In this document: positions 17,726-34,570 of the stretch, in pieces
Layout of the letters: each line of letters opens with the position of its first letter
How positions within the stretch are numbered: position 1 is the stretch's first letter
From: Macrostomum lignano
Lineage: Eukaryota
Assembly (NCBI GenBank): GCA_002269645.1
Contig: NIVC01000046.1
Location: 140,106-204,105, forward strand
DNA: 64,000 nucleotides
Reading direction: 5' to 3'
The notes under the pieces: generated by a model
What the model was told of the DNA's origin: nothing
The model's input: only the letters and a program-made list of their open reading frames with translations
Databases searched by the model: none
Translations under genes and position numbers: made by a program

Positions 17726-19225
17726 TTATCCAACAGTGCCATTGTTTGAGGTGGCGGCCAGCTCGTAGGCTGGCAGTCGCAGATCGAACAAAGGATCTTC
17801 TTCCACCAGTTCGCCAGAGTGGGCGCACACGGTGGCTGGCGGAGCGTCTGGCAGCTCAAGGCCAGACTGACGGGCCTCCCAGCCGGACAGGTAGGCGTCC
17901 ACACCTGGCGGCCCGGACAGCCTGTCAATCAGCAGGCGCCCGCCGCGGCCCAGCCGCAAACCGACATAGGCCGCTAAGGGTCGGCAATGACGCGAGCCGG
18001 CCGAGGAAGACAGATGACAGGAGGATGCAGATGCTGTTGACGACTCGGAGCCAACAACGCAGGGCAGTCGGGTCAGGCTGAACATTCGGCGTCCGTAGAC
18101 GCCAGCGAAAGCCGATCTGGGCTGAGTCCCCGACGGTGGCAACGCTGCAGAGTCTTCAGCGTCGGTCAACGGCTTGGCTGGCGCGTACACCGCGCCAACC
18201 CGACGCCTGCACCAGACAAATCGACCGCCGTTGTCACCGCCAGGCAGTAGAGAATCATCGTCGACAAACAAGGGAGGAGCGGCGGAGGCGGCGGCTTCAG
18301 CGGCTGCAACTTCGGGCGGAGTTGGCAACGGTGGCGGCCGCCTCCTCGCCCGCTTGGCTGTGGAGCCGCGTTGATGCGCCGCTGACTGTTGATGCTGTTG
18401 CTGATGGTGATTCAATTGATGCTGCTGCTGCCAGGATGAGGAAGCGGCCGCTGCTGATGCTGCTGCTGCAGACTTTTTAGCGGCAGCAGCGGCCGCGGCA
18501 GCAACGGCGGCAGCCTGCAGCTGGCTGGCGTCAAAATCGCGAGCCGACCAGCGACGTTGGAAGACGCGCAGTTCGGTGTCTAACAGAGCGGATTTGGTCT
18601 CCTCGCGCCTGACCAGCAGTTCAATGAGGGAACAGGCCCGGTCCATGTCGCGGCGAAGGCGCAGCATCTTCTCATAGCTGGCCTCGTCATTTTTCCTGTG
18701 CTTTCTAGTCTGCATCTTCTCTGTACGGCGCCGGAACGCCACATACGGGTCATTGTTCGACGAGCCGTCTCTCCGATCGGCTTTGATAGCCAGACTCAAC
18801 CGTTGGCCGTGCTTAAGCCGCTTAGCTAGCCAATAATCGTACACGGCTGTAGTTAATCCGTCATCTTTTTTCAACAGAGCCTTGGCCTCATTCAAGCTGA
18901 CAACAGTGTGATCGCTGTGCCGTTCCAACTGTTCCAGCATTCGTTCCAGATCGATTGGTGGCAAGCTGAGCTTCGAGGCTGATAGCCAGGCCTCGTCCTC
19001 GCTGTCCAGATCGTAATCTGGTGTTTCATTATCGCCGTGATCCAAGGAGAACGCCTGCACGCGGATGTACTGCTTAGGCATGCGGAATGTGCCCTCGCGG
19101 CACAGTGCGTGGTACAAACTCTTAAACTTGTTGGCATTCTCGTCAATCTCGGGTATGGGGATGGCGTGAAGATCTGTTGACTTGAACTGCTGCTGGGCGA
19201 ACAGTGCCTCTTGAAGATGGTGTTC
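17726..19225 (-). CDS. EPC1: Enhancer of polycomb homolog, exon 2 (last)
   Basis: gaacag|GAA CAC CAT (EHHLQ); PDYDLDSEDEAW, DPYVAFRRRTEKMQTRKHRKNDEASYEKMLRLRRD and LGRGGRLLIDR match EPC1/2 EPcA and EPcB; TAA at 17726-17728. Confidence 0.97.
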   Translation of the reverse strand, partial: EHHLQEALFAQQQFKSTDLHAIPIPEIDENANKFKSLYHALCREGTFRMPKQYIRVQAFSLDHGDNETPDYDLDSEDEAWLSASKLSLPPIDLERMLEQLERHSDHTVVSLNEAKALLKKDDGLTTAVYDYWLAKRLKHGQRLSLAIKADRRDGSSNNDPYVAFRRRTEKMQTRKHRKNDEASYEKMLRLRRDMDRACSLIELLVRREETKSALLDTELRVFQRRWSARDFDASQLQAAAVAAAAAAAAKKSAAAASAAAASSSWQQQHQLNHHQQQHQQSAAHQRGSTAKRARRRPPPLPTPPEVAAAEAAASAAPPLFVDDDSLLPGGDNGGRFVWCRRRVGAVYAPAKPLTDAEDSAALPPSGTQPRSAFAGVYGRRMFSLTRLPCVVGSESSTASASSCHLSSSAGSRHCRPLAAYVGLRLGRGGRLLIDRLSGPPGVDAYLSGWEARQSGLELPDAPPATVCAHSGELVEEDPLFDLRLPAYELAATSNNGTVG

Positions 19226-19744
19226 CTGTTCGGGTGAAAGTTGGGTAAGGTGAGTTGACGCTGAGACAGGCACAAGGGATGAAAGCTTTTCAAGTACTTT
19301 TGATTTTGATTAACTGTTAAATATTGCAATCATTTCTGATTGGTGAATATGAAATTTCCAACATGTCTTATTTATGTTACAACTTAGATTCTTGAAAGTT
19401 ATTTTATAGTAGCATCTAATCTTCAAGATCAAATAAATCCCAGTTTTGATCTGGAAATCTATCTATAAGGCAATCGATTTTTTATCAGAGGTGGGGAGCT
19501 GTGTGCACTCTGGTGCACTCTGCCCATTCTTCCAATCCCATTATACATATACAGTCAAACATAGGCACATACATGTAAGTTGCTATTGGACAATAGTAGT
19601 CACATGACTGCTTTCAGCCAATAGTGACTTACATGTATGTGTTGCCAATAGAAAAGGCCAAGTGAATCCCAAGGTTGCGCATGTATGCTCACATAGAAAT
19701 ATAGAGCCACCTTAACTAGGTAACTAGGCAGCAGCTACAATATC

Positions 19745-19920
19745 TTTTCGTCTTTTTGTGGTTGGCTTTTAAGTATCAATAGCATTAATTGTATAAGCAG
19801 ACCTAAGCCAAGACTCAAATTTAGTTATAATTAAATTAATTAATGCTATTGCACTTGGATTTGGGTCTAGCCTGCTAGGATATAAGAGTACTACAGAATA
19901 CTACTAGGCTATAGCCTCCT
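19745..19920 (-). mobile_element. Degenerate copy of SINE family B in EPC intron
   Basis: ttaattgtataagcag..aagccaaga..tgcacttgga aligns with 35800-35880. Confidence 0.55.
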
Positions 19921-31973: not shown

Positions 31974-32839
31974 CTGCGATACGAAACGCATCCATTGTCA
32001 TCTACAAGCCGCTGCCATCTGGTAGACTGCTGCTGCTGCTGCTGCTCCGGCGAGGACTTTAAGCCGTCCTCATCAGAGATGGAGCTCGGCAACTCAGCTG
32101 CTGTTGAAGTCGAAGCCGCAGCAGAAGCAGCAGCAGCGGTGGCGGCCGCAGCTCCGGCCACGTCAATGGAGGACTGCGGTCGGGGAGTCGTGACTGCGCT
32201 GGACACGGCTGACGCATGGCCGGGCGTGCCAGGACCTCCGCTGCAGCCTTTCATTGACGATGACGAATGATGATTGCGCTGCTGATGCAGCTGCTGCTGC
32301 TGCAGATGATGCTGATGAAGCAGATGCTGCGCCTGCAGGTGCTGCTGAAGCTGGTGAAACTGCTGTAATTGCAGTGCCTGCTGCTGCTGCTGCTGCTGCT
32401 GGGCCTGAGAGATTGCCGCTGCGGCCGCCAGCTGCTGCGCATAGTAGTTCTGGGCTAGCAGAAACTGTTGCTGCTGTTGCTGTTGCTGCTGCTGCTGCTG
32501 GGCCTGGGCTAGCATCAGCTGATGAAGGGGATTAGTCAGCATCCCGTGTCCTCCAGCTGGGTTGTACAGCGAGGCAGCAGCGGCCGCAGCCTGAGCTTGC
32601 TGAAGCATCAGCTGTTGTTGCTGCTGCTGTTGCAGTTGCTGCTGCTGCTGAGGCAGCATGACATACTGCAGACCAGCAGCGCTTGTCACTGTTGGCATGG
32701 CAACTAGACCGCCAGGGATGCTGCTAGCAACTGTTGCTAGGGGCAATGGGGCGCCAGCTGCTGCGGCTGCAGCCGCCGAGGCGGCATAAAACTGCGGCGG
32801 TAAGTACTGGCCATTGGGGCACACTGGCCGCAAGTTCAT
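31974..32839 (-). CDS. MBD5: MBD5/6-like protein, first major coding exon: polyQ/polyA region plus N-terminal half of MBD
   Basis: tttgcag|CA ATG; ends RWQRLVDDNGCVSYR-AG|gtaatt versus MBD5 GWQRRVDQNGVLYVS; phase 2 joins 27947. Confidence 0.85.
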
Positions 32840-34368
32840 TGCTGCAAAGATTGGCGAGTGTTGAGCATTCTCTAAGCACAGTTTTATTTCCTTTTTAAAG
32901 TTTTATTTATAGCATATCTATATGCCTTTATATTTATTACATTAAATATTACATTATTACAGCATTACATTACATTAACATTACATTATTACATTTATTA
33001 TTTATTTATTACATTTTAATACTTTCTCTATTTAGGAGCTAACTAACATCAGCCAAAATGTTATAAAATAAAATAGAATATCTTTGTATCTACCTCTCCT
33101 ATACTTGAAATAATAGCTCTAATTTTTATTATTAATCAGTCTTGTGACCTTTCTCTATCTTGATTTAAAGTCAAAAGCATTTTCAGGATTTCTTTAAAAA
33201 ATATTGGTATTTCAAAAAAGATTTGCATTATAAAAATCTCTATATAACTAAACTTGAATATAAAATTAAAATTGAATTGAAGTAAAATCTCACTTGCAAA
33301 AAACAGGGTGCCAATTTTGCAATTATTGTTAAAATTTAAGATGTCAACCCTATTGGAATAAGTTTTCAGACACTGTGGACAGTGCGTCTAGTGCGCCATG
33401 GCAATCATAAAGTGGCCTGGACGGTGCGTCATGACAATCTTCAAATCCTAAGGTGGTATGGACGATGTGTCATTCAAATCTTCAAATCCTAGGGTGCCAT
33501 AGCACTCTAGGTTTAGGTGATATTGTGCATGACTCCAGTCTCTATCATGTTCATTCTGATGATGCATCACTCGTTTTTGAGAGATTTAAAGAGATTGAGA
33601 GAAAGTTGTGTGTTTTACCGCACTTGTGTTTTACTGCACTCTGTTCTGTACTGTACTTCTGCCCCCTTCTGTTGTAGTTGTATCTATTTCTTAATTCTTA
33701 GTCTACTCGTCTTTTGACTTACAAAGTTACATTGTTGGTCTATTCAAAGAAAAATAAATAATGTAAATAGTGTGGCAATTGCATCAGTGAGTACTTAAAA
33801 TAATTACGAACACTGAAACCCTTTACTTCAATTTGGCTAATCGGTTAATACAAAATGAAGAAACTCCGTGATGAACAACACAGAGTTCACGAACAAACAA
33901 AATTGTCTTTGCCTTATCCACACACTTTTTCAGTAGTAGTTGTAGCACTTTGGCTCGGGTCGGGTTATCAAATCTGATAACTATTTAGCATGGTGTTTCG
34001 AAGAATATTTTCACATTTAAATGTCAGCATAAATAAATGTACGCGCAACCAATCAAAAAGATAATTAAACAAAGCAGAAAATTTGTTGAGACTTTTAATA
34101 GAATTTAGTTTACTTTTTTATTTCTTGCAACTGCGTTATAAGAGAACATTAAGAGCAATTAGCATTTGGCACTATGTTATAATGTTTATGAGGCAATAAA
34201 GAACATTTCTGCTGCGATCTTTCAACTACAATTTCCAATTTTACGATTAACTTGCATGCATATTCTAGATGACACAGCAATCAATACATATGATAGGAGA
34301 TATGCTATACTATAGCCCATAGCAATATTATCAAAGTTATAGAAATTAGAAAAACAAGTTTTACTTAC

Positions 34369-34570
34369 AGTTTGCTGAATTTCCACCGTGCTGCTGACTT
34401 TCTCCTGTGCATGCTTCTCATCCTTGTTCAGCAGCGCTGTATGTAGCGCGTGATGTCCTCCTTGCATCTTACCTGTGAGCTGCTGTGCATCATGGCGCAT
34501 GGCGCGCGTAGCGCGCCATGCGCCATGACTATGAGGAAAAAGAAAAAGTGCGCCGGACGCCGTCCGCGAA
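34369..34570 (-). other. MBD5: Probable first (leader) exon of MBD5/6-like gene with two alternative donors
   Basis: Donors CAG|gtaaga at 34473 and ACT|gtaagt at 34369; CpG-rich segment in AT-rich DNA; E2F-like TTTTCGCG near 34565-34572; 5' end not defined. Confidence 0.5.
34490..34528. promoter_or_regulatory. Perfect 18-bp inverted repeat with 3-nt loop
   Basis: tcatggcgcatggcgcgc-gta-gcgcgccatgcgccatga. Confidence 0.85.

Follow-up and report, generated by a model that had tools for sequence, protein, structure and literature searches.

Enhancer of polycomb (EPC) is a scaffold subunit of the NuA4/TIP60 acetyltransferase. The MBD5/6/SBA proteins carry an atypical MBD that, in human and fly, binds the C-terminal PHD finger of ASX/ASXL and stabilizes the PR-DUB H2A deubiquitinase, and binding of the ASXL PHD finger needs a motif of 12 amino acids (aa) in addition to K61 and C66 of MBD6 (PMC9523997). 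In terms of gene order, human MBD5 lies in the series ORC4-MBD5-EPC2-KIF5C (PMC4690300, PMC7471508) and MBD6 in the series MARS-DDIT3-MBD6-DCTN2-KIF5A at 12q13.3 (PMC3990535), and EPC1 is placed at 10p11.22 in a paper that also covers KIF5B and that band (PMC8474217). Here, we describe a 64,000-nucleotide (nt) stretch of Macrostomum lignano DNA (contig NIVC01000046.1, positions 140,106 to 204,105; the window, in what follows), in which an MBD5/6-like gene sits directly upstream of EPC on the same strand (minus), head-to-tail, with no gene detected between the two.

This arrangement resembles the human 2q23.1 block and its paralogous regions in that MBD5/6 directly precedes EPC, with the two co-oriented and nothing in between; human MBD5 and EPC2 likewise share a strand, across a spacer of roughly 100 kb. 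The window differs from the human block in its spacer of 4.5 kb, in lacking both a KIF5 after EPC and an ORC4 before the MBD5/6-like gene, and in its flanks, where a multi-RGS gene and a WSC-domain gene are found. The first-pass annotation of this DNA had likened the pair to human MBD5-EPC2 and had placed MBD6 near KIF5A and EPC1 near KIF5B. The papers cited above bear out both the MBD5-EPC2 order and the position of MBD6, and for EPC1 they document the band, with KIF5B treated alongside it. We favor the reading that the window holds two separate protein-coding genes whose adjacency passively preserves an old MBD5/6-EPC linkage and does not mark a functional unit, and we give it a probability of about 0.5. 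Such an old linkage is also implied by the vertebrate regions MBD5-EPC2-KIF5C, EPC1/KIF5B, and MBD6-DCTN2-KIF5A.

Organization of the two genes

The features of the pair are as follows, in the direction of transcription:

34371..34580, minus strand: G+C-rich island, 210 bp, with a possible GT donor at 34472-34471
31974..32839, minus strand: MBD5/6-like coding exon 1, ATG at 32839, polyQ/polyA-rich N-terminus
27948..31973, minus strand: MBD5/6-like intron 1, 4,026 bp, phase 2, splitting the MBD-like domain within the Ser codon of S-C-S-G
30034-31330: minisatellite in intron 1, 17 bp x 77
28102-28722: minisatellite in intron 1, 40 bp x 16
27524..27947, minus strand: MBD5/6-like coding exon 2, second half of the MBD-like domain (CSGELLSSADAVRGYLSRPDACLCALPLACDL)
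26656..27174, minus strand: MBD5/6-like coding exon 3, low-complexity C-terminus, TGA stop at 26658-26656
22177..26655, minus strand: intergenic spacer, 4,479 bp from stop to ATG, 37% G+C
25468-26057: minisatellite in the spacer, 590 bp, 12/24-bp period
22024..22176, minus strand: Enhancer of polycomb exon 1, ATG at 22176, MSKVSFRARALD...GMEKDEET, 153 bp, 49% G+C
17726..19225, minus strand: Enhancer of polycomb exon 2, completing the EPcA/EPL1 domain and encoding a low-complexity tail; stop at 17726

The MBD5/6-like gene (minus strand, 32839-26656) has three coding exons that join in frame into a 602-aa product, and all of its splice sites are GT/AG. Exon 1 (60% G+C) ends with the first half of the MBD-like domain (..STRWQRLVDDNGCVSYR, ~32023-31974), within which a WQRxVDxNG motif was found at 32017-31991 by tblastn with an MBD5 fragment (P0004). 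The exon breaks off within a split Ser codon (AG|) that is followed by the GT donor, and the sequence resumes in exon 2 as C|SGELLSSADAVRGYLSRPDACLCALPLACDL.... Intron 2 is 349 bp long and 50% G+C. Across both genes, G+C content is 60-66% in the four large coding exons, compared with 31-43% in the spacer and the long introns. The coordinates, the gene models, and scans of the spacer thus all agree with the earlier description of an MBD5/6-type gene directly upstream of EPC, on the same strand, ~4.5 kb away and with no gene between.

A public partial protein (P0001; UniParc UPI0007A1829D, 275 aa) is 100% identical to the MBD5/6-like product and confirms the junction of exons 2 and 3. It begins at exon 2, such that the first half of the MBD-like domain is absent from the public model, just as had been anticipated for a domain that is split by a 4-kb intron and easily missed by annotation. 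The minisatellites in the intron that splits the domain could explain the loss of exon 1 in an older assembly or annotation.

The coding part of exon 1 directly follows an AG acceptor (...tttgcag|CA ATG). In a scan of the 15-37 kb interval at a threshold of >=55% G+C, the islands comprised the large coding exons, one minisatellite, and the 210-bp island at 34371-34580, which is the sole island of this kind between exon 1 and the next gene; the 153-bp EPC exon 1, being AT-rich, falls below this threshold. The 34371-34580 island, which coincides with the 5' limit given in the first-pass annotation, is probably the promoter or a non-coding first exon for the MBD5/6-like gene, and we list it as a candidate for either. 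Within the island there is also a perfect 18-nt inverted repeat (34490-34528, TCATGGCGCATGGCGCGC / GCGCGCCATGCGCCATGA, with a 3-nt gap), which is unique in the window and might serve as a promoter or transcription-factor site or form a hairpin in a 5' untranslated region.

Judged by its sequence, the downstream gene is unambiguously Enhancer of polycomb. Its two exons, joined at GT/AG sites with the frame intact, encode a 550-aa product that matches PF10513 (EPL1) with 35 bits for exon 2 alone and 41.5 bits for the spliced protein (cut-off 25.4), and 217 homologues were found at E<=1e-10, which align from residue 1. The best of these is from Lottia gigantea (54% identity over 100% of the query, E 5e-90), and EPC proteins of molluscs, chelicerates, annelids, echinoderms, and vertebrates all fall within 49-56% identity. 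The protein has in common with EPC1/EPC2, E(Pc), and yeast Epl1 the EPL1/EPcA domain and the N-terminus MSKxSFRARALD, with 45-56% identity to animal EPCs over 280 aa; it differs in being short (550 aa), in having no detected E_Pc_C domain, and in its long branch. In a neighbor-joining tree, this branch falls beside flatworms and a nematode, a placement that is probably due to long-branch attraction, and its length points to a fast-evolving invertebrate as the host.

Assignment of the upstream gene to the MBD5/6/SBA family

The MBD-like domain was compared with a reference set comprising the vertebrate MBD5 fragment P0004, the N-terminus of which agrees with a published MBD5 cloning primer, Tetraodon H3D376 (P0005), genomic open reading frame (ORF) fragments, and the SBA domain of Drosophila, for which we translated the gBlock sequence given in the PMC9523997 supplement. 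By BLASTP, the window domain is 50% identical to P0004 over 46 aa (E 3e-10), 46% identical to the MBD5-like H3D376 over 41 aa (E 3e-7), and 40% identical to Drosophila SBA over 48 aa (E 4e-8). The corresponding Smith-Waterman alignments have shuffle z-scores of 14.6, 11.8, and 13.3, exceeding all 2,000 shuffles, and that of MBD2 (sequence checked against PDB 6c1a) has a z-score of 1.3. Exon 2 is the top tblastn match in the window for P0004, P0005, and SBA (E 0.012-0.033). When the window and seven other loci were translated in six frames, giving 8,394 ORFs, a hidden Markov model (HMM) built from independent MBD5/6/SBA sequences matched the exon-2 ORF (E 2e-4) and no other, and it matched the spliced protein at E 3.7e-8; a second HMM, to which four metagenomic invertebrate exons were added, gave the same outcome, and the MBD2 control was unmatched.

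The position of intron 1 is likewise that of the family. In eleven vertebrate MBD5 ORF fragments (P0006-P0016), conservation starts exactly at SPSG, and the residue before it has, in each fragment, codons that can end in a pyrimidine (C/T), as fits position -3 of an acceptor; this implies a phase-2 intron in that Ser codon. In the metagenomic invertebrate loci L011 and L014-L016, the MBD5/6 exon starts at SPS/SPT. Intron 1 of the window gene (codon AG|C) therefore has the position seen in vertebrate and invertebrate MBD5/6, with a match in phase that is deduced, and for the vertebrate fragments only. From these comparisons, the intron position appears to be family-wide. An AlphaFold (AF2) model of the domain predicts a β-β-β-α core (strands 8-11, 17-20, and 26-27; helix 30-37) with a predicted local distance difference test score of 81-87 (~82).

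Taken as a whole, the protein shares with human MBD5/MBD6 and Drosophila SBA the series WQRxVDxNG...S-x-SG-x-L-S...YL...CxCxL...C-x-L...FNFxP at 40-50% core identity, the intron in the Ser codon before x-S-G, a long, low-complexity remainder, and a lack of similarity to the methyl-CpG-binding MBD2 type. It differs from them in having no Pfam MBD match, in its length of only 602 aa, in lacking a PWWP domain, and in the location of the domain, which is N-terminal in those proteins and lies at residues ~270-400, behind the polyQ exon, in the window protein.

Several searches weigh against the assignment. Pfam PF01429 (MBD) has no match at E<=10, either in the whole protein or in the excised domain; phmmer with the domain against 1.84 billion representatives retrieved its own fragment P0001 and two bacterial repeat proteins only; and Foldseek with two AlphaFold models found no match in the PDB at E<0.1, merely noise such as cytochrome c peroxidase. 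The full 602-aa protein had no match among 5.8 billion proteins, in a search whose candidate list was swamped by polyQ words. PDB sequence searches with the window domain and with an MBD5 sequence returned no MBD5/6 structure and nothing beyond a weak resemblance to a WW domain; PDB entries labeled "MBD5" or "MBD6" have weak matches to MBD2 only and are probably unrelated plant proteins of the same name.

On this evidence, one could hold that the upstream gene is no true MBD5/6 orthologue, either through wrong joining of exons, as the junction of exons 1 and 2 is predicted from sequence, or because a decayed or convergent MBD-like domain no longer works in PR-DUB. PF01429 is, however, a weak test for this subfamily, because the reference MBD5/6/SBA members are themselves marginal, scoring 15.7-28.6 bits against a cut-off of 21, with genuine MBD5 and SBA reaching only 16-29 bits. 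Moreover, the two domain halves align with MBD5/6/SBA in the correct order and are joined by canonical splice sites at the family's intron position (with the phase deduced for the vertebrate genes), the z-scores are 12-15 against 1.3 for MBD2, and the family HMM is specific to this locus and leaves MBD2 unmatched. We regard this alternative as highly doubtful. The first-pass annotation had proposed PF01429 as a check on the MBD5/6 call and had named the lack of an MBD match as grounds for refuting it, and that profile does fail to recognize the protein; the assignment nevertheless holds, because the family-specific BLASTP, shuffle, and HMM comparisons support it, as PF10513 and the homologues do the identity of EPC. 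We conclude from sequence comparison that the upstream gene is a real, highly derived MBD5/6/SBA-type gene.

Derived features of the MBD-like domain

We take the essential 12-aa motif of MBD5/6 to be DGTCKCGLECPL, as read from the MBD5/6 fragments and the K61/C66 numbering; the text of the paper that defines the motif prints no sequence. The counterpart in the window is PDACLCALPLACDL, in which the position of MBD6 K61 is a Leu and the Gly of CKCG is an Ala, and in which the three Cys and two Leu of the motif align once a 2-aa insertion is allowed before the third Cys. All four invertebrate-looking metagenomic exons (L011, L014, L015, and L016) retain TCKCGLxCPL, unlike the window, and relative to them the Cys motif of the window appears to be exceptionally derived.

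A second insertion of 55 aa, basic and then acidic (RQRRSRQRRRQADEQQDGGAETSTVEDAAEDSDEAVTLPEDSAEALEAA; 27870-27700, residues ~320-375), lies between the Cys motif and FNFRP and is absent from every reference MBD5/6/SBA sequence. Following this insertion, the closing motif RLFNFRP (27694-27680) aligns with VFNFDP of the MBD5/6 primers, with the motifs of P0005 and SBA, and with SFNFDP of P0012; the FNFxP-type closing motif is thus retained, albeit displaced by the insertion.

The Leu in place of K61, the 2-aa insertion in CxCGLxCPL, and the 55-aa insertion also count in favor of a domain that has decayed or converged. The biochemical roles of both genes are given here by homology. For binding of PR-DUB and ASX by the window domain, this carries a real question mark, because K61 is lost, the Gly is changed, and the domain bears insertions.

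The spacer and transcription of the pair

The spacer has a (GACA)n run close behind the MBD5/6-like stop, and on the gene strand it contains six AATAAA and three ATTAAA, the first AATAAA being ~580 nt past the stop. No Pfam-positive ORF, no Rfam or tRNA match, and no exon-like G+C island was found in it. Known operon spacers are unlike a 4.5-kb AT-rich, repeat-bearing spacer with internal polyadenylation signals. Operon-like co-transcription of the MBD5/6-like gene and EPC appears unlikely, because the spacer is 4.5 kb long, AT-rich, and minisatellite-bearing and has this number of AATAAA and ATTAAA signals. Instead, the MBD5/6-like gene would most probably be transcribed from its own promoter in the G+C island at ~34.4-34.6 kb, and EPC from its own promoter in the region directly 5' of 22176.

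It has nevertheless to be considered that the pair is a unit maintained by selection, by way of shared or interdigitated enhancers, a common chromatin domain that co-regulates a PR-DUB and a NuA4 subunit, or a joint transcript resolved by spliced-leader addition 5' of the EPC ATG. Order and strand are as in human, no gene lies between the two, an AG is located ~45 nt 5' of the EPC ATG, and both products act, by homology, on histone H2A/H4 marks (PMC9523997 for MBD5/6), all of which such a unit would accommodate. The AT-rich spacer with its minisatellite and six AATAAA argues against it, as does the finding that none of the other invertebrate loci examined has the adjacency (see below). In addition, sba and E(Pc) are not known to be linked in Drosophila. 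We consider a maintained unit unlikely, and the proposal that the linkage is kept by shared cis-regulation or by read-through or polycistronic transcription found no support at this locus. Less likely still is the stronger form, in which MBD5/6-EPC is a pair of bilaterian age that has been kept by selection, surviving here and in vertebrates, and repeatedly lost elsewhere.

Gene neighbors in other genomes and the origin of the adjacency

EPC was surveyed at six invertebrate loci and one teleost locus with 10-kb flanks, 205 kb in all. The teleost locus (L006; Liparis tanakae SRLO01000589.1) carries an annotated EPC2, followed by a co-oriented kinesin within 8 kb. It was intended as a positive control and has a protein kinase upstream of EPC2 in place of mbd5. 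Together with the human paralogous regions, the EPC-kinesin neighborhood of the teleost makes an MBD5/6-EPC-KIF5 block that existed before the vertebrate genome duplications a reasonable inference.

Among the invertebrate loci, the gene directly upstream of EPC is a polyprenyl synthase together with a Ser hydrolase in Lottia, a carboxylesterase in Apostichopus, and an isochorismatase in Darwinula. In Helobdella robusta (L002; KB096411.1, 4022-8180), a co-oriented gene for a 703-aa N/Q-rich protein is directly upstream of EPC; the protein has no Pfam domain, no MBD5/6 motif was found in it, and it could still be an extremely decayed MBD5/6 homologue. The Echinostoma EPC is at a contig end and that of Stegodyphus has no called gene within 10 kb, and both are uninformative, as is the Helobdella locus. 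An intron-less EPL1 gene on metagenome contigs (P0089) is probably non-animal.

These data, and others, weigh against an old linkage. Neither tblastn nor the HMMs detected an MBD5/6 exon near EPC in the 205 kb of the seven metazoan EPC loci, and the same searches do recover the window exon; conversely, none of seven metagenomic MBD5/6 loci (3 vertebrate, 4 invertebrate) has EPC in its flanks, which is weak evidence because those MBD5/6 genes may be long. A kinesin, which as EPC-KIF5 would represent the more robust of the vertebrate links, was sought in the window and no DLAGSE motif was found; the only kinesin candidate consists of SSRSH matches that all lie in a repeat. The multi-RGS and WSC-domain genes, the other genes of the window, are not known to belong to the human 2q23 block, and the MBD5/6-EPC pair therefore stands alone in scrambled surroundings. 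Fast-evolving genomes usually retain little microsynteny, and a genome-wide scan is expected to give a few chance matches to human neighbors. In the literature searched, which did not extend to the gene lists of Irimia et al. 2012, the MBD5/6-EPC pair is nowhere described as conserved, and the gene names MBD5 and EPC2 are absent from the supplements of two synteny papers.

The pair has a parallel in the metazoan microsyntenic pairs and genomic regulatory blocks (Irimia et al. 2012, PMC3514665), which likewise consist of unrelated genes that are adjacent in distant animals. Those pairs differ in that their conservation spans several lineages and usually involves a developmental regulator together with conserved non-coding elements, whereas MBD5/6-EPC is seen in one invertebrate and in vertebrates and not in the other invertebrates examined.

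The adjacency may accordingly be a coincidence, in which rearrangement in a scrambled, fast-evolving genome has produced a match to human MBD5-EPC2 that carries no historical signal, and we hold this to be a distinct possibility. The different upstream neighbors of EPC in Lottia, Apostichopus, and Darwinula, the lack of an MBD5/6 exon near EPC at the seven loci, the lack of KIF5, ORC4, or any other 2q23-block gene in the window, and the long branch of EPC are all what it would predict, and we estimate that ~0.5-2 human-adjacent pairs would arise by chance in a fully scrambled genome, or tens of pairs if chromosome-scale linkage were kept and local order lost. For one given pair, however, the probability of chance adjacency would be ~2/N, or ~1e-4, rising to ~3e-3 if both genes stay on one ancestral chromosome, and the matching order and strand would add a further factor of ~4 against chance. 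An ancestral adjacency would survive in any one invertebrate at a rate of a few percent. Because a retention of this size is set against chance adjacency of ~1e-4 to 3e-3 and the order/strand factor of ~4, a relic is somewhat more likely than a coincidence; the vertebrate paralogous regions, which independently imply a pre-duplication MBD5/6-EPC-KIF5 block, argue in the same direction.

We therefore retain the reading of the pair as a passive relic. The survey leans toward absence of the adjacency from other invertebrates, an outcome that the first-pass annotation had named as pointing to coincidence. A linkage dating from the bilaterian ancestor, as that annotation proposed, is uncorroborated, in that the three informative invertebrates, a small sample, have unrelated genes upstream of EPC, and a survey of six species with 10-kb flanks neither shows nor excludes deep ancestry of the adjacency.

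Other features of the window

The flanks of the pair contain the following features:

~39850-60200, plus strand: multi-exon gene that includes three or more RGS-domain exons (41282-41911, 43986-44390, 54304-54735), divergent from the MBD5/6-like gene
12110-12478, minus strand: WSC-domain exon (PF01822, 25 bits, just below cut-off), downstream of EPC
59240-59309, plus strand: tRNA match (Rfam 32.7 bits, cut-off 29), not called by ARAGORN, overlapping a minus-strand ORF
2000-2500, 4417-4786, 8145-9181, 11370-12000, 14061-15283: minisatellites, left part of the window
39230-39790, 43650-44060, 47400-48180, 55430-55750, 56570-56970: minisatellites, right part of the window

The layout of the multi-RGS gene appears to resemble that of RGS22. 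On the other side, the WSC-domain exon is the sole coding signal in 1-17.7 kb, the rest of which consists mostly of tandem repeats. The tRNA match at 59240-59309 is probably a tRNA-derived repeat or pseudogene. Minisatellites are unusually dense in the window, and many of them, having no stop codon in any of the six frames, give rise to spurious ORFs of up to 395 aa.

Implications

If the adjacency is ancestral, it would be one more among several hundred gene pairs that are conserved across animals, and the MBD5/6-EPC(-KIF5) block that is visible in three human regions would predate the split of this lineage from chordates; it would make a useful marker for reconstructing ancestral linkage and would come as no surprise. 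Were the pair in fact held together by selection, this would point to regulation that couples H2A deubiquitination to H4/H2A acetylation and that has so far gone unnoticed. The gain in annotation is more concrete, namely an MBD5/6/SBA-type gene that escapes both the public gene model and the general MBD profile. With the Lys for ASXL binding lost and two insertions present, its altered domain is a natural test case for the residues that are needed in the PR-DUB interaction. Overall, the locus presents an unusually divergent member of the MBD5/6 family next to a known gene and, possibly, one more relic of ancestral linkage.

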